A DNA stretch of 64,000 nucleotides from assembly GCA_965240325.2 (NCBI GenBank), contig OZ251236.1, positions 930,001 to 994,000 of the forward strand. Reading direction: 5' to 3'. The DNA is from Rebecca billardiae RCC1528. Taxonomy: Eukaryota > Protista > Haptophyta. The position numbers and the translations under genes are program-made. Below the pieces are notes generated by a model. It made no database searches, was not told the origin of the DNA, and saw only the letters and a program-made list of their open reading frames with translations. Positions 8,261-26,931 of the stretch are shown here, piece after piece (position 1 is the first letter of the stretch; each line of letters begins with the position of its first letter).

Positions 8261-11200
8261 TCAGGCCTCGACAAACCAGGCGACGTGCTCCCAGAGCGTG
8301 TCGAGCCACTCCTGCAGGCCGTCGAAGTGCGCGAAGATCGGCGCGCAGCACGGCAGGTGCGCCAGCAGCTTGATGAGGTACGGCAGCGCCGTCGAGACGG
8401 ACATGAGGCTCGGCTCGTTCACCGCGAACGTCTGCGTCATCGCGACCGCCCACGAGACCATCATGTCGTGCGAGTTATCCGCGCCGATCACCTTGCCGAA
8501 CGTGATGATCACGGAGCAGCACAGCACGAAGCAGAAGCCCATCGACGCCCACGACATGATGTGGAACGCCTTCGGCCCGATCACGCACCGCGGCCGCTCG
8601 TCGTCCTCGAGCCTCGCATAGTGCCGCACGCCCGCCGGCCGCTTGAAGCCTGAGCCTGAGCCGAGCTGGCCTGGGGTCGCGGCCGCCCGCCGCCTCGCCG
8701 CGGGGTCGCGCGCCCCGGCGTCGACGATTGGCTTGGTCCGCCGCGACTGGCCGCCAAGCCACGCGCCCGCGCCTGCATGCTCGATGGCCAGCCGATGCTG
8801 CTTGGCCTGCGCCGCGCGCGCCGCGCTCGCCGCCTGCGCCCGCAGCGACGAGAGCGCTCGGTCTCCATCCGCGTCCGCGTCGGCGCACGCAGCGTTCGTG
8901 CGGCGCGCGTGCGTGTTGATCGAGCGGTAGCGCGACTCGGCCGCGCGCGCCTCGTCGCGCAGGCGCTGCTCGCGCGAGAGCCGCAGCGCGGCGGCGGCGC
9001 CCGCGCCACCGCCTTGCCTGCCGCCTCCGCTGCCGTGGCTCTCCTCCGACGACTCTGACGGTGTGGCCTCCGAGCCCGCGCGCGCGGCCGCGCCCGCCTT
9101 GGTGCCTGCGTCGCGTTGGCGCGCGCCGCCAAAGAGCCCGCCGGCAAAGCGGCCGGCGGGGGCAGGCGACGCGGCAGGGTCCGTGCTCGCCGACGCGTCC
9201 GATGCAGCCGGCGGAGCGGCCGCGGGCGCGGCGCTCGCGCCGGCAGCAGCGGGCGAGGGCTTGGGAGCCTGCTTGGCCGCGCGCGCCTCCGCCTTGATGC
9301 GCGCGCGCTCCTTGTGCCTCCTCAGCTGCAGGAGCTCGCGCTCTCGGTCTGCGGCCTGCTGCGCGCGCGCCGCCTCCTTGCCGATCTGCTGCGCCTCCGC
9401 GCGCATCTTCGCCGCCTCCTGCAACGCGTGCGCCTTCGTCCCGGCGTCCTTGTGGCGGCGCAGCTCCAGCGCCTCCGCCTGCGCGTCGAGCGCCTCGGCG
9501 CGCTCCGCCGCCCTGTCGGCCGTCGCCTCGAGCTGCGCGATCTTCTGCTTGCGCTGCAGCTCCTCCGCGGCGAACGAGCCCTCGGGCGGCGGCTCCGAGG
9601 TAAAGAGCGACGAGCGGCGGCGCGGAGGCGGCGGCTCGGCCTTGCGAACGGCGAGGAGCGCCGGCTTCCGCGGGCCGCCTTCGCGCTGGAGCCTGCGCTC
9701 GCGCGCGCGCCGCTGCCGCAGCGCGAGCTTGCGCCGCTGCGCGCCCTGCAGCACGACGGCGGCCGCCTCGCGGTCGGCGCGCGAGGCGACGGCGACGAAG
9801 CGGCGGAAGGGCCACACCTCGTTGAGGTACCACAGCTGCTTGAACACGATCAGCCCGGGCAGGCACACGCACGACGTGATGATCGACTCGATGATGTACG
9901 TGATGAGCGGCGTCTTGGCCGGCGGCGGCGGCGGCACCGTCGGGTCGGGCGGCTCGCTGGGCGAGTAGAGCATGCACTCGACGACGAGCTCGAGCGCGAT
10001 CACGTTGAAGAAGATCTGCACGAGCTGCGCGCGCGAGTACGTCTTCTCCTTCGAGAAGAGCACCGCGAGCAGCGTGTGCTCGTCGCGGAACTTGTCGGAC
10101 AGGTCGGTGGTGAACTGCTTGAGCAGAGAGCCGTCCTCCTCCGCGTCGCGCGCCGCCTGCCACTTGCTCGCGCCGCCGCCCTTGCCGACCGCGACGATCA
10201 CCTGGCCGGTGCGCGTGCCCTCGAGCTTGGCGTCCTCCTCGCGCTCGCGCACCTCGCGCGGCTGCTTCGTCTGCAGCGCGCCCACGATGAACTTGGTCTG
10301 CTCCGCGCGCTTGGCGCGCTCCTGCCGCCAGTCGAAGTAGCAGCCGACCGCGAGCAGCAGCGCGTTCGCCGCAGACAGCCCAAACACCAGGTTGTAGATG
10401 TCCTGGAACTCGGCGTAGTCGAAGTGGAGCAGCGCGTCGCCCACGTCCTGGAGCGAGAACGTGTTGATCGACACCGCCGTGATCTGCTCGAGCAGCTCCT
10501 CCTTCGACGTGGGCACCGCCATGCCGCAGAAGTCCGTCAGGTGCGTGCACGCGCACCTCAGCAGCACCTCCTCCGCCTCCGCCTCCGCCTCCGCCTCCGC
10601 GCCGCTCGCGTTGCCAAGCTCCGAGAGCGCGCGGTGGCGGCGGCGGCGCACCACGCCGAGCGCCGTGCAGCCCTCCGACGACCACGTACCCGCCGACTCC
10701 GACCAGTACTGGCACGTCGCCGGCGTCGGCTCGGGGCACTCGGGCACGGCGCTCAGGTCGGCGCCAAAGCCAAAGAGTGGGTCTGCGCGGAGGCCGACGC
10801 GCGCCGCCTCGGGCGCGGCGCGCGCGTACGCGTCGGCCCACTCCGCCCACGCCCAGCTGGGCGGCGGCAGCTCGCTCGACGCGTTGGCGGCGGGCGCGCC
10901 GGCGCCAACGCTCGCGTTCGCGTGCTGCGTCCAGTTCGCCCACGCCCGCCAGTGCTCGAGCTCGGTGGCGTTGAAGCCCGTCTGGTTGTGTCGCAGCGCG
11001 CCGAGCAGCGCGCGCACCGCCTCCGCGCGCGCGGCCGCCTCGAGCGGGTCGATCTGCGCCTGCCGCGCGGCCATGCACGCAGCGTGCGCCTCGCGCTCGG
11101 CCGCGAGCGGCTCGATCGACGCCGCGTCCACCGAGAGCGGCATCTCGATGATGATCGGCTCGGCCAGCCCGTGCACCTTGAGCGCCGAGCCCGCGGACGC

Positions 11201-13357
11201 GGACGCGAGCGAGATCGAGACGAGCCGCGTGCCGAGCAGCTGGCCGTCCTCGACCTGGCCCTCGTCGGCGGTCGCGTTGCCCGCCCCTGCCGCGTCCGTC
11301 GCGTTGCCGCACGTCGCACGCCACCGGGCGAGGTCCGCGTCCGTCGCGTTGAGCGCGCCGGTCGCGTTGCGCGCGCCGCGCAGCGCCGCGCACGCCGCGC
11401 GCCGCGCCTCGCGGCTCGCGGCGAGCTTGGCCGGGTTGGCGTGCACGTTGCGCCCGAAGCTGACGAGCTTCACGTCCACGCCGTCGTTCACGTGCTCGGG
11501 CGACTGACCGTCGAGCACGCCCGGCGGCAGCGCCAGCCCGCCCGCGCCCGCCGGCCCGCGCAGCGACGCGTTGTGCAGGTCCTCCGGTGTCGAGCGGCGC
11601 GCGCTCACGTTGAGCTGCGCGCTCTGCGCCTCGACCGCCGGCTCGCCCGCGTACATGCCGTGCAGCAGCGCGCCGCTGATCTTGCTCGCCGCGCCCTGCA
11701 CGCGCGAGCCCACGTGCAGCGCCGACGCCTCGTCGAGCGCGCTCTCGTTCGTCGCGAGCAGCGAGCTCAGCGAGCTCACCAGCGCGCCGCCCGTGTCCTC
11801 GTCCAGGCCGGTCGTCGTCGACGCGTTCGCCAGGCTGTCGACGAGCGCGGCGGCGGTGAGCTGCGACTTGGGCGTGAGCTCGTCGGGCCGCGCGACGACC
11901 GCCTTGATCGTCGACGAGCGCTGCGAGAGCGCCGTCGCCGAGAGCGGCTCGGTCGAGGCGCTCGTCTGCTCGAGCACGTCGAGCATCTGCTCGCGCGCGC
12001 GCGTCTGCTCCGCCTTTGCCGCCGCGGGCGCCTCCGCCGCCGCCTCGCCCGGCGACGCCTCCTCGTTGAGCTTGTCCGCGAGGCCCGAGACGAGCTGCTG
12101 CGCGGTGTTCGCGTCCGCGCTGCTCGCGATCGAGAGCAGGTCGTCCACCGCGCTCGCGGTGATCACCACCGTCGTCACGCGCACCGTGCGCACCGCCGCG
12201 CTCCGCACCGACGCGCCGAGCGCGTCCGTCACGCGCACCACCATCGTGAAGTTGCCCGCGGGCAGGAAGGCGCTCGCGCTCGGCGCCGCGCTCGCGTCGG
12301 AGAGCACGCGCTCGGTCGAGTGCGACTGCTTCTCCAGCCCGCCGCGCGCGTCGTGCTCGTGCGGGTGCCCGCGCGCGCTCAGGAACGTGTACGTGAGCGG
12401 CAGCTCGGCGTCGCTCCACTCGCCCGCCGTCAGGTTGAACTGCGTGCTCAGCTCGGAGCCCTCCCACGGCGAGACGCGCACCCAGCCGCCGCGCGGCGGC
12501 GCGTTCACCGCCACGCGCGTCTCCGCCGGCGTCGCCAGCTGCAGCTCGGGCGCGCTCACCGTCAGCTTGAAGACGTACGTCTCACCGGGCACCAGCAAGT
12601 GCGGCTGCAGCACAAACGCGGGCCGGTCGAGCCCCGTCGTCGTGAGCGCCGGGTCGGAGAGGTCGAGCGGCGTGCCGTCCGCGCGGCGCACCTGCCACTC
12701 GTACTGCCAGCGCACGGCGCCGGCCGCCTGCTTCTGCCGCGCCACGTCGTCGATGCTCGCCTGCAGCCGCACGCGCCCGCTCGGGTTCACCAGCCGCTCG
12801 CCGAGCGCGTTCAGGCGCTCCGGCCTCGAGAGCGTGACGACAGCCGGGACGATCCGCGGTGGCGAGGGCGGCGGCGGCGGCAGCGGCGGCGGCGGCTGCG
12901 GCGGCCGCGACGGTGGGGACGGCGGCGGGCGCGGCGGCGGCCTGGAAGGCGGCGGCGGCGCGTGCGGCTGTTGATGCACGACCGGCGCAGGGTGAAATCG
13001 CGCGCAACCGTGGGTTGCGCAGGTCGGATCCACTCCGTGTTTGGCACAATCCGCGTGCTGGCGGCGGAGCCACGCGAGCTCGTCGTTTTGCTCGGCGTGG
13101 AAGAAGAAGGGCAACGGCTCGTGCGCGGCGCACTCCTCAAAGCCTTGGGTCACGTCGTCGCTCGCACACTCAATCGCGCGGCTTCCCGGGCGCGCGCCGC
13201 CGTAGCAGGCCCACTTCGAGTTGACGAAGCGCGCGACCATGCCGGGGTGGATCTCCTCGCAGAAGCTGTCGAGCATGCCCTGCACGCAGCCAGCGCTCGC
13301 GCCCGGCGCCCAGCAGCAGAGCGCCAGGGTAATTGCGAGCTGCGCTGTCCGCATCAT
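8261..13357 (-). CDS. Polycystin-1-like membrane receptor, copy A (signal, Cys-rich head, short Pro linker, REJ-like region, GAIN/GPS, ~5 TM), 1698 aa
   Basis: Signal peptide; REJ-like VNAPPRGG...FNLTAGEWSDAELPLTYTF; GPS CQYWSE...WSSEGC...CACTHLTDF; PKD1-type TM motifs (EHTLLAVLF...YSRAQ; FG...VSWAVAMTQTFAVNEP). Uninterrupted ORF. Confidence 0.85.
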   Translation of the reverse strand: MMRTAQLAITLALCCWAPGASAGCVQGMLDSFCEEIHPGMVARFVNSKWACYGGARPGSRAIECASDDVTQGFEECAAHEPLPFFFHAEQNDELAWLRRQHADCAKHGVDPTCATHGCARFHPAPVVHQQPHAPPPPSRPPPRPPPSPPSRPPQPPPPLPPPPPSPPRIVPAVVTLSRPERLNALGERLVNPSGRVRLQASIDDVARQKQAAGAVRWQYEWQVRRADGTPLDLSDPALTTTGLDRPAFVLQPHLLVPGETYVFKLTVSAPELQLATPAETRVAVNAPPRGGWVRVSPWEGSELSTQFNLTAGEWSDAELPLTYTFLSARGHPHEHDARGGLEKQSHSTERVLSDASAAPSASAFLPAGNFTMVVRVTDALGASVRSAAVRTVRVTTVVITASAVDDLLSIASSADANTAQQLVSGLADKLNEEASPGEAAAEAPAAAKAEQTRAREQMLDVLEQTSASTEPLSATALSQRSSTIKAVVARPDELTPKSQLTAAALVDSLANASTTTGLDEDTGGALVSSLSSLLATNESALDEASALHVGSRVQGAASKISGALLHGMYAGEPAVEAQSAQLNVSARRSTPEDLHNASLRGPAGAGGLALPPGVLDGQSPEHVNDGVDVKLVSFGRNVHANPAKLAASREARRAACAALRGARNATGALNATDADLARWRATCGNATDAAGAGNATADEGQVEDGQLLGTRLVSISLASASAGSALKVHGLAEPIIIEMPLSVDAASIEPLAAEREAHAACMAARQAQIDPLEAAARAEAVRALLGALRHNQTGFNATELEHWRAWANWTQHANASVGAGAPAANASSELPPPSWAWAEWADAYARAAPEAARVGLRADPLFGFGADLSAVPECPEPTPATCQYWSESAGTWSSEGCTALGVVRRRRHRALSELGNASGAEAEAEAEAEEVLLRCACTHLTDFCGMAVPTSKEELLEQITAVSINTFSLQDVGDALLHFDYAEFQDIYNLVFGLSAANALLLAVGCYFDWRQERAKRAEQTKFIVGALQTKQPREVREREEDAKLEGTRTGQVIVAVGKGGGASKWQAARDAEEDGSLLKQFTTDLSDKFRDEHTLLAVLFSKEKTYSRAQLVQIFFNVIALELVVECMLYSPSEPPDPTVPPPPPAKTPLITYIIESIITSCVCLPGLIVFKQLWYLNEVWPFRRFVAVASRADREAAAVVLQGAQRRKLALRQRRARERRLQREGGPRKPALLAVRKAEPPPPRRRSSLFTSEPPPEGSFAAEELQRKQKIAQLEATADRAAERAEALDAQAEALELRRHKDAGTKAHALQEAAKMRAEAQQIGKEAARAQQAADRERELLQLRRHKERARIKAEARAAKQAPKPSPAAAGASAAPAAAPPAASDASASTDPAASPAPAGRFAGGLFGGARQRDAGTKAGAAARAGSEATPSESSEESHGSGGGRQGGGAGAAAALRLSREQRLRDEARAAESRYRSINTHARRTNAACADADADGDRALSSLRAQAASAARAAQAKQHRLAIEHAGAGAWLGGQSRRTKPIVDAGARDPAARRRAAATPGQLGSGSGFKRPAGVRHYARLEDDERPRCVIGPKAFHIMSWASMGFCFVLCCSVIITFGKVIGADNSHDMMVSWAVAMTQTFAVNEPSLMSVSTALPYLIKLLAHLPCCAPIFAHFDGLQEWLDTLWEHVAWFVEA
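9683..12838. repeat. Left arm of a ~3.15 kb inverted repeat (partner 22453-25605)
   Basis: The reverse complement matches 22453-25605 apart from a few substitutions, a 3-bp indel and a 6-bp indel. Confidence 0.95.
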
Positions 13358-14568
13358 CTTGACAGGGCAGGGCTTCCTTGTCTCGACCCCCCGAAGCAGC
13401 TGAACGTGCCCTCATCGTCTGCTCACCAGATTCCCAATCTCGCCGCGAGATAACCACCTTGACGTTCGCCAATATTACAGGCGTTGAGCAGGCGTTGGGA
13501 TTTCTCATAGTACGACAGGCGTGCGGCGCCTGATGAAGTCGTGCGTTCTCCTATTGAACCCCCTTGCTCCTATGTGCATCCGTGCCCGTGCGCCGCTTTT
13601 GTGCATCATCACATTCGCCGTACATCATCAGTCCATTACCCGCGCCCATATTCTGACGCTCGCGCCCGGCGGCAGCCCTGCGCGCCCAAAGTAGGACCGG
13701 CGGATTCCATGGCCGACGACGCCCGGTGACGGATGACGCCCGGCATTTTGGGCGGGGCAGCTCACAGTTCTTAACGCCGCCAGTGCCAGGCATGGCGTGC
13801 ACGATGGCCATGGCCTGAGCGTTGGACACGTGAATGACTAATAGTTCTCCGGCTCGCGCGGTCCTACCAAAGGACCATCGTCCTTTGGTCCTACTGTAGT
13901 GAGCTATCCGGTTCATGGTCGCGCCGCTGTGAGCCGGACTGGGCCCCGAGTGACTGTGAGGCTCTAAAGTGACGTTTGCAGCGCACAGACAGACCACGAA
14001 GCACCGACACGGAATGAATGCAACACAAGCCCACGGCGCGTCCATGTCAGCTCGGCTTTGGTGCCGTCAGGCTGGCGGCACACGTCTCTCAGTCCGCACG
14101 ACAGCGACGACTGCGACGAGCCCCACAGTCCGATGACGACTGCTTCGTCGCTTTGTTGTCTTCGCGCTCCAGGAATACACGCGGCGCCGGCGTATCGGCG
14201 GGAAACGCGCACGCGCGTCGGCGTCCCGCCGTTCGCCAGAGGCCGGCGAATATCTGGCGGCGAGAAGCGAAGTGAGCGTGCGGCGGGCCGGCGGCCATAA
14301 TTCATTCAGCAGTGATTTTACACGCATCGGACGGCCTGGCTCCACACAGCGCGCTGGCTCCTGGGTGCCAACCAAGCAGATTTGCCCCGAGTCCGGCTCG
14401 CTTCTGATTGCACGATGGAAAGGAGGCGATGCGGGCGTCCTATTCGAATTCGTTGAAGGAGGCGCTTTTCGAGACGTCAATGAGACCCGCCGGCGCGAAA
14501 ATGTGGAACCGCGTCCTCGCTCGGTCCCGGCTGGGGTTGCTGTGGGCCAAGGTACTGACTGAGGCACG

Positions 14569-16000
14569 ATGCGCGCTGCCGCCAGACCATGGGCGCCGCG
14601 CGGCGCGGCTGCGCGTCTCGCGCTGCTCTTCGCCGCGGCGTGGACGTGCGGTGGCCCGCGCATGGTAGAGGCGAACTCGATGCCGTGGACTTTCGCGCCG
14701 CTCCTGCCCGACTGGCAGCCTCCGAACTGGCATGACCTCGACGAGCACGGCTTTGTCCTGATCCGGCAGTTTGTGCGTGGCGACGTGGCGGCGTGGCGCG
14801 AGGCGGTGGTGGAGAACTGGAAGAAGCGCGTGGTGAACACGCCCGGGCCGGGAAACCGCGCGATCGACAGCGCCGCGATGATCCCGCTCAGGCACGCCGT
14901 GCGCGTGATGATCGAGCAGATCCGGGAGAGCAACGCAACGCGCCTCGAGCCGGACACGATCTACGACCCAGTCAAGTGCCCCTCGACTGGGGCCGTGGCG
15001 TCATACTACTTCGTCTCGGGCAAACCGCCAGACGCTAAAGTGGCGGCCAAGCTCGATGGTGTGTCACTTGGCAACGCTGGCGCGTTTCGCGCCGGGCTTG
15101 ACTGGTGCGAGCCGCGTTGCGCCACCTCCTGCGAGCCGGCCTGCGCCTGGCGCGCACCCCGTCTGAATCACCGCATCACGGCAGCTACGCTCGCGAGGTG
15201 AGCGCGAGGCTCCGTTCAATCACCCCGCGTGACCTTGGCTCCCTCGCCCCCCACCTCCTGATACTGTACGCACAGGCACACTGACCTGTCCTTGGCGTGG
15301 CACCCCGAGGATCAGAGGGCAGATGCATTCCTGAATTTCTACATCCCAGTGGTGCGTGAGCGTGCGCTTCCACCGACGCCTCCAAGGCCAACGCTTGAGG
15401 TGGGGTCGCGACTGCTACGCCTCGCTGGCTCATGTGATCTCGCGTGTGCGCCGCGACTTCCTCTGTGCCACTGTGCCGCTGCCCTGCGCGATCGCTGCGT
15501 GCGCGATCGCTGCGTGCGCTCGACAGGTGAAACCATACGCAGATGATGCCAACTTGGGCGTCATCCCCTTCTCTGCCTTCGCGCCGGACACGCGCCGCCA
15601 GCTGGAGAGCTCGTCGTCCAAGGTGTACCGCAGGCGCAAGCTCAAGCAGGACTCGCCCGCTCCCGCAGACGTCCCCCAGACGCCCAACACCACGGCGTGG
15701 GTCCAGGAGAAGGATGTGTCCGGATGCAGCAACCGCCGGAGCTTCCCGCAGAACTTGTTTGACGCTGGCTTCGAGCCCAACACCAACGAGGGCGACCTCC
15801 TGCTGAAGCGCGGCGATGTGGTGCACAGGTCCGGCCCCAACCTGAAGACGCCCTTCCGGCTGGCGGTTTCTGTCCGCGCGCTCAAATGGCCGTCCACTCC
15901 GGGCAGGGCTGAGTGCATGGTGCGCAAGGGGCTGGGCTTCATGACACGACAGATTCAGCAGCAGTACACGAAGCGACTCTGCTCAGTGGCTGGCATGTGA
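14569..16000 (+). CDS. PhyH-like Fe(II)/2OG dioxygenase with signal peptide (~361 aa); exons 14569-15104, 15276-15351, 15527-16000
   Basis: LDEHGFVLIRQF; splicing restores DWHTD (HxD), NFYIPVVKP, GDLLLKRGDVVHRSGPN and RLAVSVR. Summed exon length (1086 bp) is a multiple of three. Confidence 0.75.
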
Positions 16001-16234
16001 TCACTGATCAGAGTCTTACTACTCAGTCCAGAACTCTGAGTACAATTACAAAACAATCCATCCGCGATCACATCAGGGGCAGATGATCAGCCAGATGGCG
16101 ACTACTAGACTTGATTGCATCAGCAAGATGGCGGAGTAATGACTATTATATAATGTAACGAACCGAGACGCCACTGTCTGCCCGGAACGGGTGGGCGTGG
16201 CCGCGACGAGCTAGTTAGATAATTAGTTAGTTAT

Positions 16235-16324
16235 GGCGCACGCCCCCCCCCCCCCCCCCCCCCCCCCCCGAAAGGTCTGAGCGTGAGCGAAAGCCGGGGG
16301 GGGGGGGGGGGGGGGCGGCGCACG
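16235..16324. repeat. C27 - 26 nt - G20 inverted homopolymer, flanked by the 8-bp direct repeat GGCGCACG
   Basis: C run 16243-16269, G run 16296-16315, GGCGCACG at 16235-16242 and 16317-16324. Confidence 0.9.
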
Positions 16325-17339
16325 TGCTCCGCAAAATCAAAAAGAGGATGCGCGCAGGATTTTGGGGATTTTTCGGTAGGTGGCCACCGCGTATGAGTGG
16401 ATATCGCTGCCGCAATGATTGCGTTTGTACTGCCCCTTAATTTTAACGATAGTAACACTTAGGGGAATGCAGGGTGGAATAGCACATAACACCAGCCGTG
16501 TGTTAGAACATTCCGTCATAGTAAGATGCCTGAATTGTAAGAGCCTGAAACAGCTCGCCAACCATAGAAACGATAGGTTGGGTCGTCAGCTTTGATTCAC
16601 GCGCTTCTGAAAAACAGCGTTTTAGATTAGACGCATCCCTCTTCTCTTAAGAGAACTGCGCTTCAAAAACACCGTTTCAACGAAAGACGATCGCCCGCCA
16701 TTCAACTGAAACGAGATTCTGCATAAAGCGAACCAAACATTTGGTTCGGTGGCAATCCAATTCTTGTATTTCAGATGAACGACACAGCCTGAAGGCGAAC
16801 ATTCTCGCTCTCGACCCATATGATCATTTGTTGATGAGGCCTGAATTCGCTGCTCATCAACAATGATGGCAGCCGGACGCGATATGGTATTGCGCGGGTA
16901 GCTTGAATCGACGTTCCCGCGCGCCGTGGTATCATACGGTTATCAAGCTACTCTTGTTGATATACTTTTGGCCATCTACTGATACGACGTCAATGCGGGT
17001 GGCAATCGCAACCCGCATATTGACGGGCCTGAAAATTATCATGAGCATAAGAATTTCTACCGCTTCACGCACGACCCTTCGGATTCTCTCCCATTTAATA
17101 CCGGCGCGTCCGGGACAGCTTGACGAATATGAACGATAAACTTGAGCGGACAAATCTTCATAATATCTCCCTTCATGATTAATACTATACCATGGTACGG
17201 CCTTTGTGGCTCGCGCATTGACGGGCGGGCAGCCGAGGCTCCGAACGAGGCGCCGAGAAGCCGCCACTGCCCATGTAGGCCGCCGCCGCACGATCGTTCA
17301 ATCCGACAGACTCAGCGCAGGTGCGCGCGGCTGCGATGG

Positions 17340-18195
17340 GTCCCAACGGCCGTCGGCATCGCATTCGTGCCTCTTTCCCCCCTCGCGCCCCGCCCCGGTG
17401 CCGACCCGCGTCCACGCGCGTCGGCGCGCCCGTCGGCGTCGCGCAGTTTCTTTGTGCAAGCTCTTGGCAGCTGCTGCTGCAACTACGAGTCGCTCGCAGA
17501 CGGCAGAGGTGATGCTGCTGGCGGCCAGAGGGCGATACGATGCCGTGTCTTTGACTGGGCTGTGCCGACCCATCACGGCCACGCGCGCGGTGCGCGGTAA
17601 CCCGACTGCTCAGCCGCATCACCCAGCGCAGCTTCGCCCGCGACGACGGCTTCGCCTGGCTACCACTGCTCATCAGCCGCGTGCCCGGCTTCGGCTCGGC
17701 GGGCGTCCGGTTCGGCCGAGCACGGCTGCAGCGCAGCACGCGAGACCTCGGCTGGAGCGGCCGGCTGTGACGCGGATGGCGGAGGCGGGCTTTGGGCTCG
17801 GGCTGCCCATGAGCCACCACGGGCTGTACCGTCTGCGCAGATCGCGCTCGGCCCGGCCGCAGCCCTCCTGAGCGCGCGCCTCAGAGCTGAGACTGATCAC
17901 GGGCAGGCGCACGAGCGACACTGCCGTCAGCCGCCGCGTGCCCGGCTTCGGCTCGGCGGGCGTCCGGTTCGGCCGAGCACGGCTGCAGCGCAGCACGCGA
18001 GCGAGACCTCGGCTGGAGCGGCCGGCTGTGACGCGGATGGCGGAGGCGGGCTTTGGGCTCGGGCTGCCCATGAGCCACCACGGGCTGTACCGTCTGCGCA
18101 GATCGCGCTCGGCCCGGCCGCAGCCCTCCTGAGCGCGCGCCTCAGAGCTGAGACTGATCACGGGCAGGCGCACGAGCGACACTGCCGTCAGCCGT
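17340..18195 (+). pseudogene. Possible decayed tyrosine-recombinase (DIRS/Crypton-type) fragment
   Basis: Broken frames give AVGIAF...RPG, SQTAEVMLL...LCRPITA, GLPMSHHGLYRLRRS and ASELRLITGRRTSDTAV. The order resembles YR box I, CPV, HSLR and GRW-x-S motifs, judged by eye only. Confidence 0.3.
17676..18195. repeat. Two-copy tandem duplication, unit ~257-261 bp
   Basis: GTGCCCGGCTTCGG at 17681 and 17938; GGGCAGGCGCACGAG at 17901 and 18162; copy 2 has a 4-bp insertion. Confidence 0.95.
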
Positions 18196-19019
18196 GCGGC
18201 TGTGTCGAGCCGCCGCGTGTGCTCGCAGGCGCGGCGCTCGCATGGGCTCAACGCGGGCGCAGCGGGTGCGCGCAGCTGGCGCACGCAGCCACGCGCGGAA
18301 CTAGCTAGGGCCGTGCGCCCTCAACTTCGTTGTTTACTACCCGAAGATCGGCGTAGCCGATCATAATATATATATAGTATATCAATATACATATATTATT
18401 TTCAGTGTACCGCCATCGGTCCACTCCCCGGAGCGCGGATGTCTGTCTGGATGACCAGTCGGGCCGGTCCGGCCGGTGATGTCAGCGTCGTCAGCCGTGC
18501 TCCGGACGCGGGACGGCGGCTATCTATCATCTATGCGAGCGACAAAAAATGTATAATAAGAATTCTCTCAGCGATCTTCGCGGAGATTCTCATTCAGAAT
18601 CAGATGCCACGGAGAGTCTCTTCGGAGTGGCACTGGCAGGTAGTTGAACGCCGAGTGCTGCTAATAATACCGGAACAAGCTAACTACACGGTGTCGACGG
18701 TCCTGACTCCTCGGATGACCCATCACCCCACCACAGCTGCATGCGATTGGCATGGGGTGAACTTGAACGCTCGCAGGGACAGCGCGCGCGCGCGGCCGAG
18801 TCCGGTAGCGGCACTTCGGGTGGTCTAGCCTGCCTACACACTTGATTGATAGTTGATTATTCGGTCACTTGACCGTAATTGTCGAGGGGACGTGCCTAGG
18901 CCTAGCGACCCACCAAGCCAGCCCACGCCGCCCCAACTCCCGAAGGCGAGTACGGGCGAGTGCGCCCGCACGCCGACTGCACCGAGTCCCCATGGTGAAG
19001 CTCCTGAGCAAAGCTTCAC

Positions 19020-20394
19020 CAGCAGCGGCAAAGGCGGATACAGCACTCAGCAGTATGCATGTCTTATTATTAAGCTAGCGGTGTCGTCGATGCGACCACA
19101 GCCGAGAGGCCGGTTGAGCGCCTCGACTCCCCTCGCAAGTGCGGACTCGTGCAGGCCTCGACCACCACCGCATGTTTTGGGCTCCACAGATGGAGCGCAT
19201 GAAGCCGTCGCGATCGTTGCCGCCTTGCGACTCCATGGCGGCAACGCCGACCGACATGTGGCACCTGTAGATGGCGCGATCGAGCATCGGCGCGCATGTA
19301 GAGCAAGCCTCGGAGGTAGCCGGAACATCTTGCCATGTCGCGTGCGTGGATGATATCGCATCGGTAGACACGCCATGCGTGTCCCGCAGTCGATTTACGC
19401 GACGCTCGATCCGCACGCTCTTGGATGCGTGGGCTCATCGTGCACAAGATCGTGGGAGTTCCGTGGCCGCTCGCACGATGGCGGTTGCCCTCTCTTCGCC
19501 CCGCCCCAAAAGCGCGTGCTACGGGCAGCAACGCGCCTGGCGGCGTGGGCGGCGGTGCGGGCGGCGGCGCGGGCATCCGGCGCGAGCACTCGCCTGCGCT
19601 GTCCGTGCCCAGGGTCGCCGCTCGGCTGCCAGGGGCGAGCAACTGACGCTGTGGTGTGCTGGTTGTGGGGCCGTCACCCTGGTCCTGGACGCCGGTTGTC
19701 CCACAACCGAGCGCGCGCGCACGCGCGTACGCGCGCGCGCGCCCGATCGCTGTAGCAGTGGCGGCAGGCGGAGACGGTGTGTGTCAATAGCCGGTTGAGT
19801 TGTGTGTACGATATAGGCACACCGATGATCGTACGCGCAGAACTGAGGCGCTGGCGCTCAATGGTGATCTTGTCCTATGGCATAGGACTGAGTCCTATCT
19901 GTTGCAGGGGGATATCCGGTCAATGCGGTGCCCGCATCCTTTGCCCGATGGTCCGGGCGCGCCCGCCCGGGACGAGCCGCCGCCGCCGGGCCGAATAGCC
20001 CAGAATATAGTGATGCCGACATTGATGACGCGCAATTCGCCTACCCGCCTAGGCGCTCGCCCACGACTAAGGCCGCTCGCCACTCGACACATTCGCCGCT
20101 CGCCATTCGGTCGACACATTCGGCCGCCACTCTCCACATGCACATACTGGGCAAGCCGCGTTAATCTGACTTAATTGGCAGAGTCTGTCTCTCAGGCCCT
20201 GACGCCGACGCCGGTCCGAGCCGAGGCCAATAACAATGTCAATTGCCTGGCGGCGCCAGCACTGGCAGCAGTGGCAAAGGGATGCATGTATGTGCATGTC
20301 TTAAGCTAGCCGGTGGGTCGATGCGACCACAGCCGATCGAGAGGGCGGTCGAGCGCCTCGACTCCCCTCGCAAGTGCGGACTTGTGCAGGCCTC
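19020..20394. repeat. Imperfect ~130-bp direct repeats (19020-19159 and 20266-20394) about 1.24 kb apart
   Basis: Shared TGCATGTCTTA...TAAGCTAGC...GTCGATGCGACCACAGCCGA...GAGCGCCTCGACTCCCCTCGCAAGTGCGGACT.GTGCAGGCCTC. Confidence 0.85.
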
Positions 20395-20904
20395 CCGCTT
20401 CGCGGGATCCGGTCGGCCGGGGTGGGCTCCGGGCGCCGCGGGGCGCGGGCGGCAGTGCTCAGGATCTTATCTAACGGCCGGGTGTTGTAAGACAATAGTA
20501 TGTGCAAAACGCAAGTCTGATTGGACAGTACTCAGCCGTTGGGTTCGGACCAATCACGAGCCGATGTGGCGCAAGATCTTCATCTCAGGCTGGGCCGTTA
20601 ATGCCCATCATTATGATGAGTTCGACGCAAATAGACCCTCGACCGAATCTTTTGACTTTATGATTGAGCGATTGACTCCGCGTTGACATATTGAACAGGC
20701 ACATGTGGGTACGCAAGCTCTGCACGGGAGACGGGACGGCTGCGCGTTGTGCACATTGTCATTCTATCTAATAACTTCATCGACTTTCGAGTGACGATGC
20801 CAGGCGGGGCAGGCACGAGCCCGTGCGCCTGGACGAGCGGGGCGATGCCTCTCGGGGAGCATCGGCAGCACTCGCCGCGGGTGCGGTCCCGCAGACGAAC
20901 GGCG

Positions 20905-23900
20905 ATGCGGGCGACGCCCGCACTCGTGCTCGCTCTGGCGCTCTGCGCCGACCTGCCAGGGGCGCGCGCCGGCTGCGTCCAGAGCGCACTCGACAAGTAC
21001 TGCGCGCGCATCCACACCGGCATGGTCGCGCGGTATGTCACCTCCAAATGGGGCTGCTACGGTGGCACCTCCCCACTCAAACGCGCGCGAGAGTGCGCGA
21101 GCGATGATCACACCGAGGGGTTCGAGATCTGCCCCATGCACGAGCCGATCCCCTTCTTCTTCAGCGACGACCACCACCACAACCTCTATCAGCTGCGCCG
21201 GCAGCACGCGCACTGCATGCTGGACAATGCCCCCGCAAACGCCCCGGTCCGCAACATCAAGCCGCAGCCGAGTGCGCCGCCCCCGCCCTCGAGGCCACCG
21301 CCTCGACCTCCGCCGCCGCCGCCGAGCCCGCCGCCACCGAGCCCGTCACCGCCGCCGAGCCCGCGGCCGCCACCACCGCCGGCGCCACCGCCGCCGAGCC
21401 CACCGCCACCACCTCCGCCCTCGCCTCCGCCGCCGAGGCCGCCGCCGCCACCACCGCCGGCGCCACCGCCACCGAGCCCACCGCCACCACCTCCGCCCTC
21501 GCCTCCGCCGCCGAGCCCGCCGCCGCCACCTAGCCCACCGCCACCAAGCCAGCCACCGCCACCGAGCCCTCAGCCACCGCCGCCGCCGAGCTTGCCTCCT
21601 CCGCCAAGCCCGAAGCCGCCACCGCCGCCGTCACAGCCACCGAGCTTGCCGCCGCCGCCGAGCCCGCCGCCGCCAAGTCCGCACCCGCCGCCACTTCCGC
21701 CGCCATCCGCGCCGCCACAGCCGCCGCCGCCCAGTCCAGCGCCGCCGCCGCCGCCAGGGAGGCCACCGCATCGGCCGCCGACTCCGCCACCGCCGCCGCC
21801 GTCGCCGCCGCCGAGCCCGCCGCCACCGCCGCCGAGCCCACCGCCGCCGCCGCCGAGCCCGCCGCCGAGCCCGCCGCCGAGCCCGCCGCCGCCGCCACCA
21901 GGTAGGCCACCGCATCGGCCGCCGACTCCGCCACCGCCGCCGCCGTCGCCGCCGCCGAGCCCGCCGCCGCCGCCACCAGGGAGGCCACCGCATCGGCCGC
22001 CGACTCCGCCACCGCCGCCGCCGTCGCCGCCGCCGAGCCCGCCGCCGCCGCCGCCGAGCCCACCTCCGCCGCCGCCGAGCCCGCCGCCGAGCCCGCCGCC
22101 GAGCCCGCCGCCGCAGCCGCCACCGCCGTCGGCGCCGCCGAGCCCGCCGCCGCCCATGGGCTGCACCGACCCGCACGCGGACAACTACGACTCGTTGGCG
22201 GTGGTGAACGTGGTGGGCGAGTGCGTGTACACGGGCTGCACCGACCCGAGTGCCTTCAACTTCGACTCGACCGCGACGCTTGACAGCCACGAGCGCTGCC
22301 GCTATTCGCCCCCGCCGAGCCCGCCGCCGCCGCCGACGCCGCCGCCCAGCGCGCCGCCGCCGTCGCCGCCGTCGCCGCCGTCGCCGAGCCCACCGCCGCT
22401 CCCGTCGCCTCCGCCGTCGCCACCGTCGCCGCCCACCGTCGACGCGCCAACCGTCACGCTCTCGAGGCCGGAGCGCCTGAACGCGCTCGGCGAGCGGCTG
22501 GTGAACCCGAGCGGGCGCGTGCGGCTGCAGGCGAGCATCGACGACGTGGCGCGGCAGAAGCAGGCGGCCGGCGCCGTGCGCTGGCAGTACGAGTGGCAGG
22601 TGCGCCGCGCGGACGGCACGCCGCTCGACCTCTCCGACCCGGCGCTCACGACGACGGGGCTCGACCGGCCCGCGTTTGTGCTGCAGCCGCACTTGCTGGT
22701 GCCCGGTGAGACGTACGTCTTCAAGCTGACGGTGAGCGCGCCCGAGCTGCAGCTGGCGACGCCGGCGGAGACGCGCGTGGCGGTGAACGCGCCGCCGCGC
22801 GGCGGCTGGGTGCGCGTCTCGCCGTGGGAGGGCTCCGAGCTGAGCACGCAGTTCAACCTGACGGCGGGCGAGTGGAGCGACGCCGAGCTGCCGCTCACGT
22901 ACACGTTCCTGAGCGCGCGCGGGCACCCGCACGAGCACGACGCGCGCGGCGGGCTGGAGAAGCAGTCGCACTCGACCGAGCGCGTGCTCTCCGACGCGAG
23001 CGCGGCGCCGAGCGCGAGCGCCTTCCTGCCCGCGGGCAACTTCACGATGGTGGTGCGCGTGACGGACGCGCTCGGCGCGTCGGTGCGGAGCGCGGCGGTG
23101 CGCACGGTGCGCGTGACGACGGTGGTGATCACCGCGAGCGCGGTGGACGACCTGCTCTCGATCGCGAGCAGCGCGGACGCGAACACCGCGCAGCAGCTCG
23201 TCTCGGGCCTCGCGGACAAGCTCAACGAGGAGGCGTCGCCGGGCGAGGCGGCGGCGGAGGCGCCCGCGGCGGCAAAGGCGGAGCAGACGCGCGCGCGCGA
23301 GCAGATGCTCGACGTGCTCGAGCAGACGAGCGCCTCGACCGAGCCGCTCTCGGCGACGGCGCTCTCGCAGCGCTCGTCGACGATCAAGGCGGTCGTCGCG
23401 CGGCCCGACGAGCTCACGCCCAAGTCGCAGCTCACCGCCGCCGCGCTCGTCGACAGCCTGGCGAACGCGTCGACGACGACCGGCCTGGACGAGGACACGG
23501 GCGGCGCGCTGGTGAGCTCGCTGAGCTCGCTGCTCGCGACGAACGAGAGCGCGCTCGACGAGGCGTCGGCGCTGCACGTGGGCTCGCGCGTGCAAGGCGC
23601 GGCGAGCAAGATCAGCGGCGCGCTGCTGCACGGCATGTACGCGGGCGAGCCGGCGGTCGAGGCGCAGAGCGCGCAGCTCAACGTGAGCGCGCGCCGCTCG
23701 ACACCGGAGGACCTGCACAACGCGTCGCTGCGCGGGCCGGCGGGCGCGGGCGGGCTGGCGCTGCCGCCGGGCGTGCTCGACGGCCAGTCGCCCGAGCACG
23801 TGAACGACGGCGTGGACGTGAAGCTCGTCAGCTTCGGGCGCAACGTGCACGCCAACCCGGCCAAGCTCGCCGCGAGCCGCGAGGCGCGGCGCGCGGCGTG

Positions 23901-26900
23901 CGCGGCGCTGCGCGGCGCGCGCAATGCGACCGGCGCGCTCAACGCGACGGACGCGGACCTCGCCCGGTGGCGTGCGACGTGCGGCAACGCGACGGACGCG
24001 GCAGGGGCGGGCAACGCGACCGCCGACGAGGGCCAGGTCGAGGACGGCCAGCTGCTCGGCACGCGGCTCGTCTCGATCTCGCTCGCGTCCGCGTCCGCGG
24101 GCTCGGCGCTCAAGGTGCACGGGCTGGCCGAGCCGATCATCATCGAGATGCCGCTCTCGGTGGACGCGGCGTCGATCGAGCCGCTCGCGGCCGAGCGCGA
24201 GGCGCACGCTGCGTGCATGGCCGCGCGGCAGGCGCAGATCGACCCGCTCGAGGCGGCCGCGCGCGCGGAGGCGGTGCGCGCGCTGCTCGGCGCGCTGCGA
24301 CACAACCACCCAACTGGCTTCAACGCCACCGAGCTCGAGCACTGGCGGGCGTGGGCGAACTGGACGCAGCACGCGAACGCGACCGGCGGCGCCGGCGCGC
24401 CCGCCGCCAACGCGTCGAGCGAGCTGCCGCCGCCCAGCTGGGCGTGGGCGGAGTGGGCCGACGCGTACGCGCGCGCGGCGCCCGAGGCGGCGCGCGTCGG
24501 CCTCCGCGCAGACCCACTCTTTGGCTTTGGCGCCGACCTGAGCGCCGTGCCCGAGTGCCCCGAGCCGACGCCGGCGACGTGCCAGTACTGGTCGGAGTCG
24601 GCGGGTACGTGGTCGTCGGAGGGCTGCACGACGCTGGGCGTGGTGCGCCGCCGCCGCCACCGCGCGCTCTCGGAGCTTGGCAACGCGAGCGGCGCGGAGG
24701 CGGAGGCGGAGGCGGAGGAGGTGCTGCTGCGGTGCGCGTGCACGCACCTGACGGACTTCTGCGGCATGGCGGTGCCCACGTCGAAGGAGGAGCTGCTCGA
24801 GCAGATCACGGCGGTGTCGATCAACACGTTCTCGCTCCAGGACGTGGGCGACGCGCTGCTCCACTTCGACTACGCCGAGTTCCAGGACATCTACAACCTG
24901 GTGTTTGGGCTGTCTGCGGCGAACGCGCTGCTGCTCGCGGTCGGCTGCTACTTCGACTGGCGGCAGGAGCGCGCCAAGCGCGCGGAGCAGACCAAGTTCA
25001 TCGTGGGCGCGCTGCAGACGAAGCAGCCGCGCGAGGTGCGCGAGCGCGAGGAGGACGCCAAGCTCGAGGGCACGCGCACCGGCCAGGTGATCGTCGCGGT
25101 CGGCAAGGGCGGCGGCGCGAGCAAGTGGCAGGCGGCGCGCGACGCGGAGGAGGACGGCTCTCTGCTCAAGCAGTTCACCACCGACCTGTCCGACAAGTTC
25201 CGCGACGAGCACACGCTGCTCGCGGTGCTCTTCTCGAAGGAGAAGACGTACTCGCGCGCGCAGCTCGTGCAGATCTTCTTCAACGTGATCGCGCTCGAGC
25301 TCGTCGTCGAGTGCATGCTCTACTCGCCCAGCGAGCCGCCCGACCCGACGGTGCCGCCGCCGCCGCCGGCCAAGACGCCGCTCATCACGTACATCATCGA
25401 GTCGATCATCACGTCGTGCGTGTGCCTGCCCGGGCTGATCGTGTTCAAGCAGCTGTGGTACCTCAACGAGGTGTGGCCCTTCCGCCGCTTCGTCGCCGTC
25501 GCCTCGCGCGCCGACCGCGAGGCGGCCGCCGTCGTGCTGCAGGGCGCGCAGCGGCGCAAGCTCGCGCTGCGGCAGCGGCGCGCGCGCGAGCGCAGGCTCC
25601 AGCGCACGACGCAGAAGGAGGCGCGCTCTCGCAAGCCCGAGCCGCCGCCGCCGCGCCGCCGCTCCTCGCTCTTCACCTCGGAGCCGCCGCCCGAGGGCTC
25701 GTTCGCCGCGGAGGAGCTGCAGCGTAAGCAGAAGATCGCGCAGCTCGAGGCGACGGCCGACAGGGCGGCGGAGCGCGCCGAGGCGCTCGACGCGCAGGCG
25801 GAGGCGCTGGAGCTGCGCCGCCACAAGGACGCCGGGGAGAAGGCGGTCGCGGCGCAGGAGGCGGCGAAGCTGCGCGCGGAGGCGGAGCAGATCGGCAAGG
25901 AGGCGGCGCGCGCGCAGCAGACCGCAGACCGAGAGCGCGAGCTTCTGCAGCTCAGGCGGAACAAGGAGCGCGCGCGCATCAAGGCGGAGGCGCGCACAGC
26001 GGAGCAGGAGCGTCGCGCATCGCTCGCAGCCGAGCAGGCGAGCGCGCGCGCGGCCGCGGCCGCGGCTGCGGCGGAGGCGGCGGCCAAGCCGCCTGCCCGC
26101 GGCGGGCTCTTCGGCGGCGCGAAGAAGCGCGACGCCGGGCCCGGCGCGGCACAGACCACCTCGGACTGCACGCCCTCCGAATCGTCGGAGGGCAGCCTCG
26201 GCGGCGGAGCCGGCAAGGGCGCCAGCGGCGGCGCGGCGCGCTCGCGTGACCGTGAGGTGAGGTTGCAAGATGATGCGCGCGCAGCTTCGGCGCGCGCGCG
26301 CACGCTCGACGCGCAGGCGCGCCGCGTGGAGGCGAAGCGGCCGGGCAGCCGCGAGGCGACGCAGCTGCGAGCGCAGGCAAGCGAGGCGGCGCGCGCGGCG
26401 GAGGCGGCGCAGCGCAGGGCGCAGCTTGAGCGCGACGGCGCGCCGATGTCGCGCAAGGGCGACGCCGCTCGCACGCGCGGCTCCGCGCGCGCCGAGCCGC
26501 GGCGGCGCAGCTCGGTCCGGCCAGGCCTGCTCGACGGCGCGTCGGCGGCGCGGCCGGCGCGCGTGCGCGCATACGCCAGGTTCGACGACGACGAGCGGCC
26601 GCGGTGCGTGATCCGGCCCAGGACGTTCCACATCATCTCGTGGGCGTCGATGGGCTTCTGCTTCGTGCTGTGCTGCTCCATGATCATCACGTTCGGCAAG
26701 GTGATCGGCGCGGACAACTCGCACGACATGATGGTCTCGTGGGCGGTCGCGATGACGCAGACGTTCGCTGTGAACGAGCCGAGCGTGATGTCGCTCTCGA
26801 CGGCGCTGCCGTACATCATCAAGCTCGTCGCGCACCTGCCGTGCTGCGCGCCGATCTTTGCGCACTTCGACGGCCTGCAGGAGTGGCTCGACTCGTTCTG

Positions 26901-26931
26901 GGAGCACTTTGCGTGGTTCCTCGAGGCGTAG
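20905..26931 (+). CDS. Polycystin-1-like membrane receptor, copy B (signal, Cys-rich head, long extensin-like SPn stalk, two GCTD-P-A-x-N repeats, REJ-like region, GAIN/GPS, ~5 TM), ~2008 aa
   Basis: ATG at 20905 (MRATPALVLALALC); ~300-aa Ser-Pro(3-6) tract; GCTDPHADNY and GCTDPSAFNF; REJ/GPS/TM core as in copy A. Confidence 0.87.
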   Translation: MRATPALVLALALCADLPGARAGCVQSALDKYCARIHTGMVARYVTSKWGCYGGTSPLKRARECASDDHTEGFEICPMHEPIPFFFSDDHHHNLYQLRRQHAHCMLDNAPANAPVRNIKPQPSAPPPPSRPPPRPPPPPPSPPPPSPSPPPSPRPPPPPAPPPPSPPPPPPPSPPPPRPPPPPPPAPPPPSPPPPPPPSPPPPSPPPPPSPPPPSQPPPPSPQPPPPPSLPPPPSPKPPPPPSQPPSLPPPPSPPPPSPHPPPLPPPSAPPQPPPPSPAPPPPPGRPPHRPPTPPPPPPSPPPSPPPPPPSPPPPPPSPPPSPPPSPPPPPPGRPPHRPPTPPPPPPSPPPSPPPPPPGRPPHRPPTPPPPPPSPPPSPPPPPPSPPPPPPSPPPSPPPSPPPQPPPPSAPPSPPPPMGCTDPHADNYDSLAVVNVVGECVYTGCTDPSAFNFDSTATLDSHERCRYSPPPSPPPPPTPPPSAPPPSPPSPPSPSPPPLPSPPPSPPSPPTVDAPTVTLSRPERLNALGERLVNPSGRVRLQASIDDVARQKQAAGAVRWQYEWQVRRADGTPLDLSDPALTTTGLDRPAFVLQPHLLVPGETYVFKLTVSAPELQLATPAETRVAVNAPPRGGWVRVSPWEGSELSTQFNLTAGEWSDAELPLTYTFLSARGHPHEHDARGGLEKQSHSTERVLSDASAAPSASAFLPAGNFTMVVRVTDALGASVRSAAVRTVRVTTVVITASAVDDLLSIASSADANTAQQLVSGLADKLNEEASPGEAAAEAPAAAKAEQTRAREQMLDVLEQTSASTEPLSATALSQRSSTIKAVVARPDELTPKSQLTAAALVDSLANASTTTGLDEDTGGALVSSLSSLLATNESALDEASALHVGSRVQGAASKISGALLHGMYAGEPAVEAQSAQLNVSARRSTPEDLHNASLRGPAGAGGLALPPGVLDGQSPEHVNDGVDVKLVSFGRNVHANPAKLAASREARRAACAALRGARNATGALNATDADLARWRATCGNATDAAGAGNATADEGQVEDGQLLGTRLVSISLASASAGSALKVHGLAEPIIIEMPLSVDAASIEPLAAEREAHAACMAARQAQIDPLEAAARAEAVRALLGALRHNHPTGFNATELEHWRAWANWTQHANATGGAGAPAANASSELPPPSWAWAEWADAYARAAPEAARVGLRADPLFGFGADLSAVPECPEPTPATCQYWSESAGTWSSEGCTTLGVVRRRRHRALSELGNASGAEAEAEAEEVLLRCACTHLTDFCGMAVPTSKEELLEQITAVSINTFSLQDVGDALLHFDYAEFQDIYNLVFGLSAANALLLAVGCYFDWRQERAKRAEQTKFIVGALQTKQPREVREREEDAKLEGTRTGQVIVAVGKGGGASKWQAARDAEEDGSLLKQFTTDLSDKFRDEHTLLAVLFSKEKTYSRAQLVQIFFNVIALELVVECMLYSPSEPPDPTVPPPPPAKTPLITYIIESIITSCVCLPGLIVFKQLWYLNEVWPFRRFVAVASRADREAAAVVLQGAQRRKLALRQRRARERRLQRTTQKEARSRKPEPPPPRRRSSLFTSEPPPEGSFAAEELQRKQKIAQLEATADRAAERAEALDAQAEALELRRHKDAGEKAVAAQEAAKLRAEAEQIGKEAARAQQTADRERELLQLRRNKERARIKAEARTAEQERRASLAAEQASARAAAAAAAAEAAAKPPARGGLFGGAKKRDAGPGAAQTTSDCTPSESSEGSLGGGAGKGASGGAARSRDREVRLQDDARAASARARTLDAQARRVEAKRPGSREATQLRAQASEAARAAEAAQRRAQLERDGAPMSRKGDAARTRGSARAEPRRRSSVRPGLLDGASAARPARVRAYARFDDDERPRCVIRPRTFHIISWASMGFCFVLCCSMIITFGKVIGADNSHDMMVSWAVAMTQTFAVNEPSVMSLSTALPYIIKLVAHLPCCAPIFAHFDGLQEWLDSFWEHFAWFLEA
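22453..25605. repeat. Right arm of the ~3.15 kb inverted repeat (partner 9683-12838)
   Basis: Near identity to the reverse complement of 9683-12838. Confidence 0.95.

Follow-up and report, generated by a model that had tools for sequence, protein, structure and literature searches.

Mosaic identity in an inverted pair of REJ/GPS receptor genes from the haptophyte alga Rebecca billardiae

The R64 shufflon, the Mu Gin/G segment, and the phase-variable type I hsdS loci are invertible systems in which a dedicated site-specific recombinase acts on short sites and switching occurs at high frequency. Inversions of the spacer are also known for the palindromes of the human Y chromosome. The closest precedent for the locus described here is the 24-kb "flip/flop" region of Saccharomyces chromosome XIV, which has flipped in the course of evolution but stays stable under laboratory conditions (Salzberg et al. 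2022, PMC9731477). Both of its orientations are seen in many yeast strains and species (PMC9731477). In the vsp gene pairs of Giardia lamblia, the whole open reading frame and 139–729 bp of flank are identical, which has been attributed to gene duplication (Adam et al. 2010, PMC2996952).

Here, we describe two neighbouring genes, A and B, of Rebecca billardiae RCC1528. These inverted paralogs lie head to head, are divergently transcribed, and share a long near-identical core between diverged ends. All coordinates refer to the window, that is, the whole stretch of 64,000 nt that was analysed (GCA_965240325.2, OZ251236.1 positions 930,001–994,000, forward strand). The sample is one genome, one haplotype, and one assembly of 72 Mb in 41 contigs; the host alga is GC-rich.

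Architecture of the receptor genes and their relatives

Gene A (8261–13357, minus strand) is a single open reading frame encoding a stalked REJ/GPS receptor of 1698 aa. The protein begins with a signal peptide and a six-Cys head on a short Pro-rich stalk. The REJ module and the GPS motif come next, then three hydrophobic segments, and a long loop rich in Ala, Arg, and Glu leads to a hydrophobic region at the C-terminus. Its paralog, gene B (20905–26931, plus strand), is also a single open reading frame and encodes 2008 aa when counted from the ATG aligned with the start of A, the frame itself opening at 20749. Each coding frame has a start that resembles a signal peptide and terminates at a conserved stop. 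The layout of B is that of A, except that its Pro-rich stalk is ~430 aa long, an approximately tenfold difference in stalk length. Head A, comprising the signal peptide and the six-Cys domain, lies at 12970–13357 on the minus strand, and head B together with the long Ser/Pro stalk occupies 20905–22451 on the plus strand. The B stalk carries two short Cys-bounded "CTDP...N(Y/F)DS" motifs (direct-repeat families D1 and D2), which are missing from A. Genome-wide, the only clear matches to head A are B and a further paralog, C, and there is one weak match on contig C1.

The Pfam REJ profile (PF02010) matches both proteins past its cut-off, with E values of 2.4e-26 for A and 3.1e-26 for B, over profile positions 215–450 of 452. 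The GPS motif CACTHLTDF is present in both, ~50 residues ahead of the first hydrophobic segment, with Pfam GPS profile scores of 20.7 and 21.5 bits, slightly below the cut-off of 22.5. A loop of ~100 residues separates hydrophobic segments 1 and 2, and a hydropathy scan finds four strong segments past the GPS plus a weaker C-terminal stretch. In neither protein does Pfam detect a PLAT domain after the first membrane segment (E up to 0.1) or a PKD_channel domain. The term polycystin-like, used in a preliminary description of this DNA, is thus apt for the REJ-GPS part and does not carry beyond it. A PDB sequence search with the core as the query gave no match.

Receptors of this family are numerous, with at least about 90 REJ loci in the genome. 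Paralog C, which lies on another contig (G000 contig 16, 1681 aa), has the architecture of A and B and a Pfam REJ match, and the genes neighbouring the A and C loci are unrelated to each other. Two other head-to-head REJ pairs display an A/B-like pattern of elevated or patchy identity: one on contig C8 has a 7.6-kb arm at 94–99.6%, and one on contig C26 has a 300-nt patch at 98.7% inside 74%. A word-index protein search with the whole of A returned one relative only, a Diacronema lutheri protein with 37% identity, whose gene is single-copy and lies in a locus without an inverted partner. A metagenome scan with the core and exact-protein look-ups of A and B gave no match.

The spacer between the two start codons (13358–20904) consists of two sides without mutual homology. 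It contains young interspersed repeats at ~16228–18397 and 19158–19922 and a candidate gene in two plus-strand ORF pieces (14569–15201 and 15356–16000). Pfam matches neither piece in separate searches, even with E = 10 allowed, and the Atlas search gives no more than a weak lead to PhyH (0.83). No tRNA was found in the spacer.

Mosaic identity and silent-site divergence of the arms

Arm A (9683–12839, minus strand; A residues 175–1225) is the homogenised core, which starts at the end of the stalk and takes in REJ, GPS, and hydrophobic segments 1 to 3; its inverted partner, arm B, lies at 22452–25605 on the plus strand. In a base-by-base alignment, the arms differ by 13 substitutions, one 3-nt indel, and one 6-nt indel across 3157 nt (99.6% identity), and both indels are in frame. 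The two arms lie 9612 nt apart. The divergent pair with near-identical arms of ~3.15 kb that had been pointed out in the preliminary description is reproduced by this alignment to within 1 nt. A repeat search recovers the same arrangement as inverted matches at 10983–12968/22323–24308 (98%), 9683–10594/24694–25605 (100%), and 10564–10989/24305–24730 (96%), with outer matches at 9268–9647/25629–26008 (94%) and 8265–8642/26550–26927 (91%).

The arms are themselves a mosaic. A perfect sub-tract of 1143 nt (11697–12839, minus strand; partner in B 22452–23594) shows 0 differences at 306 silent sites, ends exactly at the start of the Pro-rich stalk, and is the youngest conversion class. A second perfect sub-tract of 875 nt (9683–10557, minus strand; partner 24731–25605) forms the other end of the arm, and dS is 0 in both of these outer parts. 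The arm middle (10558–11696, minus strand; partner 23595–24730) has a dS of 0.027 and contains all 13 substitutions and both indels, a clustering with p ~5e-5 by simulation. On the C-terminal side, at 9683, the arm meets an island of 35 nt that contains substitutions and two indels of 6 nt each. Past this heterology island, identity resumes at 94% for 380 nt in an older conversion tract (9268–9647, minus strand; dS 0.079), then falls to ~50% at the amino-acid level and returns to 91% in the last 378 nt. This last stretch, the C-terminal membrane segment (8265–8642, minus strand; dS 0.19), is a separate, older tract. On the C-terminal side, this refines the abrupt loss of identity previously described for both sides of the arms.

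The preliminary description had stated that the identity of the arms includes silent sites and had proposed a comparison of dS along the copies. By region, A-B dS is 0.86 in the head, 0.010 in the core, 0.079 in the post-core tract, 0.72 in the loop, and 0.19 in the C-terminus, and the contrast between the core and its flanks is 80-fold. Synonymous differences number 8 at 823 silent sites in the core versus 127 at 265 in the head and loop (Fisher p = 2e-79), which bears out the silent-site statement. The heads of A and B are 57% identical in amino-acid sequence and are sisters relative to C, with which head A shares ~30%; therefore, the A/B duplication is itself old. Beyond their coding regions, A and B share no homology, either ahead of the start codons or past the stops.

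Constraint cannot explain the near-identity of the A and B cores, because the core of paralog C has diverged from that of A with a dS of 0.44, a dN of 0.30, and ~58% amino-acid identity. The A/B core has a GC3 of 98%, the C core one of 95%, and the head and loop one of 87–89%. This pattern fits GC-biased conversion; the contrast with paralog C is modest, and codon bias could be the cause. Polarising the 13 differences between the arms against two outgroups, paralog C and D. lutheri, points consistently to neither copy as the donor or as the derived one.

Gene conversion and alternative explanations

We consider A and B to be old inverted paralogs whose core has been kept near-identical by repeated interlocus gene conversion while the ends have diverged since the duplication, and we give this reading a probability of roughly 0.85. 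It follows from the low core dS of 0.010 against 0.86 and 0.72 in the ends, and from the core of paralog C, which varies. In the proposed mechanism, non-allelic conversion between A and B would overwrite the middle of the gene, with the REJ module, the GPS site, and membrane segments 1 to 3, and divergence would have continued in the cytoplasmic loop and, on the N-terminal side, in the six-Cys head and the proline stalk. Loss of homology appears to determine where the tracts end: the N-terminal limit would be the stalk of roughly tenfold unequal length, and the C-terminal limit the 35-nt island with its two indels. Either such blocks of heterology or selection protecting the heads and tails may account for the tract boundaries. 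Conversion has recurred, as at least five tract age classes show. The preliminary description had held, as its minimum claim, that conversion of the core is ongoing, and the 80-fold dS contrast, an outgroup core free to vary, and tracts of several ages all agree with it.

One rival reading is that the entire gene was duplicated in inverted orientation only recently and that its head and tail then diverged very rapidly; the fairly high dN/dS of ~0.5–0.6 in the head and loop is in its favour. It is nevertheless highly improbable, as the head and loop have almost saturated silent sites (dS 0.72–0.86, versus 0.010 in the core) and the non-coding flanks lack any homology. We regard as very unlikely an artefact of assembly or polishing, in which the arms would truly be more different or one copy would have been patched from the other. 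The perfect tracts of 1143 and 875 nt are of the type that multi-mapping polishing can homogenise, and small differences in them could have been erased in this way. However, the 13 substitutions and two indels retained in mid-arm indicate that the assembler separated the copies, and polishing would be unable to equalise sequences expected to be tens of per cent apart, like their flanks. The contiguity of the assembly (72 Mb in 41 contigs) also suggests reads longer than the arms, and the inverted repeats of yeast came out alike in independent long-read assemblies (PMC9731477).

A reading that includes inversion is compatible with gene conversion and adds a further claim to it. The arms are collinear, share codon phase, and carry indels in multiples of three; therefore, a crossover between them would invert 9.6 kb and create in-frame head-A/tail-B and head-B/tail-A genes. 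Resolution of the conversion intermediates as crossovers could produce this 9.6-kb inversion, with exchanged heads and tails, as a by-product that is probably rare. A stronger proposal is recurrent flip-flop, in which crossovers would invert the interval often enough for both orientations to be present across cells or strains and for all four head-tail combinations to be expressed there. Arms of 3.15 kb that are 99.6% identical, 9.6 kb apart, and able to form chimeras in frame speak for it, as do the repeated recent conversions, which indicate that the arms do interact, and the many evolutionary flips of a yeast region of like geometry (PMC9731477). Set against this are an assembly that is contiguous across the locus in one orientation, a search of the alga's own genome that found no third copy of the arm, and the yeast analogue itself, in which no flip was seen in ~54,000 mitoses and 950 meioses (PMC9731477). 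We hold recurrent flip-flop to be possible but rather unlikely. It is doubtful that natural populations carry both orientations and express four head/stalk-tail forms, with the arrangement recurring at the C8 and C26 pairs and making inversion a regular route of diversification.

A programmed switch of the shufflon, Gin/Hin, or hsdS type, in which a dedicated recombinase would change receptor specificity on demand, shares only a formal resemblance with the locus, namely, inverted paralogs with a common core and variable ends. Pfam finds no domain of any kind in the 12 spacer ORFs scanned (~150 aa upward), and thus neither a recombinase nor a transposase. The arms offer kilobases of coding homology in place of short recombination sites, and the spacer, with its young interspersed repeats, is intergenic DNA of an ordinary kind. 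Such a switch is barely credible here. The earlier proposal of a flip-flop cassette stands in its geometry, which permits in-frame chimeras. A working cassette draws no support from the assembly, which shows one orientation and no additional arm copy, or from the scanned spacer ORFs, in which no recombinase domain was found.

Significance and comparison with known systems

The A/B pair offers a clean and quantifiable case in which, within a surface receptor, a single module evolves in concert. The REJ/GPS base next to the membrane is held uniform, and variation is open to the ligand-facing head, the cytoplasmic loop, and the length of the stalk. The receptor family is very large and undescribed and belongs to a little-studied algal lineage. 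If the interval flips, it would be a eukaryotic inversion polymorphism that re-pairs protein domains in frame, unlike the yeast and Y-chromosome precedents. The geometry permits a head-swapping inversion, which is put forward as a testable idea, not as a finding.

In protein architecture, A and B resemble polycystin-1 and the sea-urchin REJ receptors in the order of REJ, the GPS motif (C-x-C-x-HLT-x-F), and membrane segments. Polycystin-1, however, has 11 membrane segments as opposed to about four or five hydrophobic segments past the GPS in A and B, and the A/B head and extensin-like stalk are unrelated to animal polycystins. The bacterial invertible systems are alike in logic, as inversion re-pairs a constant part with alternative variable parts, but they have a recombinase, which the scanned ORFs of the A/B spacer lack.

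Closer likenesses are found among inverted repeats in eukaryotes. The arms of the human Y-chromosome palindromes are near-identical through intrachromosomal conversion (e.g., PMC8600007); unlike those of A/B, they extend from tens of kb to Mb, contain whole genes, and create no gene chimeras at their ends. The Giardia lamblia vsp pairs are surface-protein genes of a large family, arranged head to head or tail to tail at distances of a few kb, and their identity breaks off sharply (Adam et al. 2010, PMC2996952). No old, diverged ends were found in that study, whereas in A/B the core alone is identical and the ends are old. The Saccharomyces flip/flop region shares the most with A/B: kilobase inverted repeats of paralogous genes, homogenised within the genome and near-identical (~4 kb in yeast, 3.15 kb in A/B), surround a segment that is invertible by non-allelic homologous recombination. 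The spacer is 24 kb in yeast and 9.6 kb in A/B, which is known in one orientation only. The yeast repeats hold whole genes, and their inversion alters no protein; in contrast, the A/B repeat is the middle of a gene, and its inversion would give chimeras.

Organisation of genes A and B and their relatives

The window corresponds to bases 930001-994000 of contig 19 in an assembly of 72 Mb, 41 contigs and roughly 70% GC. Two paralogs, A and B, are each encoded as a long single open frame and point in opposite directions, away from one another. Gene A lies at 8261-13357 on the minus strand (1698 aa), and gene B runs on the plus strand from an ATG at 20905 to 26931 (2008 aa); the frame of B opens at 20749, and alignment with A and relatives sets its start at the ATG. 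Each protein opens with a signal-peptide-like segment and then a six-Cys head, which is also kept in relatives. Behind the head come a Ser/Pro stalk (~45 aa in A versus ~430 aa in B), a REJ domain (Pfam E ~1e-26) and a GPS motif, CACTHLTDF, with a Pfam GPS score slightly below cut-off. Past the GPS, three hydrophobic segments lead to a loop of ~400 aa rich in Ala, Arg and Glu and then to a hydrophobic region at the C-terminus. The preliminary description called these proteins polycystin-like receptors; judged by domain content, the term suits the REJ-GPS module only, as Pfam gave no PLAT or PKD_channel match in either protein. The B stalk also contains two adjoining short Cys-bounded motifs, GCTDP..A.N(Y/F)DS....C, at ~22170-22320 (B aa ~420-475), which have no equivalent in A and no Pfam match.

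Paralog C, used here as the outgroup, shares the head-stalk-REJ-tail layout (1681 aa; contig C16:1906699-1911744, minus strand), and a fourth, more distant member lies on C23 at ~509500-512200. The protein collection yielded one relative, a Diacronema lutheri gene (37% identity) that is single-copy and has no inverted partner at its locus; a metagenome search and exact-protein look-ups for A and B returned no match. Across the genome, a REJ profile has ~100 matches at roughly 90 loci, and many of these sit in open frames of 5,000-21,000 codons. A four-copy tandem REJ array on C19 (1573818, 1591482, 1608927 and 1626821) has a spacing of ~17.6 kb and near-equal scores.

Two further head-to-head pairs occur among the REJ loci. 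The pair on C8 forms a 7.6-kb inverted repeat (2130560-2138122 versus 2165557-2157996), with arms ~19.9 kb apart that are 93.9% identical overall and 83-99.6% per 500-nt window. The frames of both copies are interrupted (an in-frame stop at 2157787-2157789; overlapping frames near 2133682-2135078), which may reflect either introns or decay. In its head region, the right-hand gene has about five tandem repeats of 1.4 kb (2149274-2156507). The pair on C26 (195972-198959 / 218840-221726) sets a 6771-codon frame opposite a 2201-codon frame and is 74% identical overall; one 300-nt window (198359-198659) at 98.7% looks like a small conversion patch.

Silent-site divergence and the origin of the shared core

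A repeat search recovered the near-identical inverted arms of the preliminary description, and base-level alignment sets them at 9683-12839 in A and 22452-25605 in B, within 1 nt of the coordinates given there and with 9612 nt between them. Thirteen substitutions and two indels separate the arms; one indel is 3 nt long, and the other, of 6 nt, lies within a GAG/GCG (Ala-Glu) repeat. Every difference falls within A 10558-11696, leaving 1143 nt at one end of the arms and 875 nt at the other perfect, and this clustering is significant in simulation (p ~5e-5). An abrupt loss of identity had been described on both sides. It is found on the N-terminal side, where amino-acid identity drops to 57%, but the C-terminal side is stepped: a 35-nt island with two 6-nt indels is followed by 380 nt at 94%, after which amino-acid identity is roughly 50% over ~750 nt; the last 378 nt are at 91%.

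Silent-site divergence between the copies (Nei-Gojobori dS), taken by region, sets the core sharply apart: dS is 0.86 in the head, 0, 0.027 and 0 in the N-terminal third, middle and C-terminal third of the core, 0.079 in the post-core tract, 0.72 in the cytoplasmic loop and 0.19 in the C-terminal segment. Of the 823 silent sites in the core, 8 differ, against 127 of the 265 in the head and loop together (p = 2e-79). Purifying selection cannot explain the core identity, since the same region diverges in paralog C (dS 0.44 and dN 0.30 against A, ~58% amino-acid identity). A recent whole-gene duplication is excluded because the flanks of A and B are non-homologous, with no homology detectable 5' of the start codons or 3' of the stops; head identity is 57% between A and B versus ~30% between A and C, and the duplication is itself old. 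Gene conversion as the source of the core identity is strongly supported by these comparisons, with a probability of about 0.85. At least five age classes of conversion tract can be distinguished, indicating repeated events over a long time, so the earlier wording of "ongoing" conversion is fair. GC3 peaks in the homogenised parts, at 98% in the core of A and B against 95% in the C core and 87-89% in head and loop; this peak fits GC-biased conversion, although alone it is not strong evidence.

On the N-terminal side the tract limit falls at the point where the proline stalk ends, and this stalk is ~tenfold longer in one copy than in the other; the youngest tracts end on the C-terminal side at a small indel-rich island. 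Heteroduplex extension is inferred to halt where homology between the copies fails; alternatively, selection guarding distinct heads and tails may set the boundaries.

Geometry and likelihood of inversion

The arms are collinear and share a codon phase, and each indel between them is a multiple of three in length, so the geometry proposed for head/tail exchange is right. A crossover anywhere within the arms would invert the interval that contains the spacer, the two heads and the presumed promoter of each gene, yielding in-frame head-A/tail-B and head-B/tail-A genes. The predicted four receptor forms would exist across a population only, as a single cell would carry two at once. A search of the genome itself found exactly two arm copies in one arrangement and no alternative contig. 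In-frame inversion is possible and, by analogy with yeast, may occur on evolutionary timescales; an inversion polymorphism is rather unlikely, and a programmed inversion switch is very improbable.

Within the spacer, no recombinase domain was found in the 12 ORFs scanned, and no tRNA was found. Young interspersed repeats with copies on many contigs, 92-99% identical, occupy 16228-18397 and 19158-19922; among them is a perfect direct repeat of 194 nt (17740-17933 / 18001-18194), and their ORFs gave no protein domain. The spacer also carries a candidate gene, split into two ORF pieces (14569-15201 and 15356-16000, plus strand), with a signal-peptide-like start; searched separately, the pieces had no Pfam match even at E = 10, and their sole Atlas lead was a PhyH-containing cluster at 0.83. 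Downstream, A adjoins a Cupin_8/JmjC-type protein gene (6365-7981, minus strand; Pfam E 2.7e-24), and the gene next to paralog C is unrelated to it.

Comparison with known systems

In bacterial shufflons, Gin/Hin segments and hsdS loci, inversion relies on short sites and on a recombinase dedicated to them. Its logical outcome is the same as that of the proposed A/B inversion, but no such component is seen at this locus. The A/B locus belongs to a known class, that of homogenised inverted paralog pairs. In Giardia, vsp genes are paired head to head or tail to tail, and the similarity breaks off abruptly at divergence points (PMC2996952); those pairs are identical over the whole ORF, whereas A and B are identical in the core only. 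Arm-to-arm conversion is also described for human Y palindromes (PMC8600007). The closest documented case is the flip/flop region of Saccharomyces chromosome XIV, where 4-kb inverted repeats of paralogous genes are continually homogenised and a 24-kb interval has switched orientation many times within species, with zero orientation changes in ~53,800 mitoses and 950 meioses (PMC9731477). The Saccharomyces repeats are whole genes, so that inversion alters no protein; the sole distinctive feature of the A/B pair is that the repeated part lies inside each gene, as an internal module.
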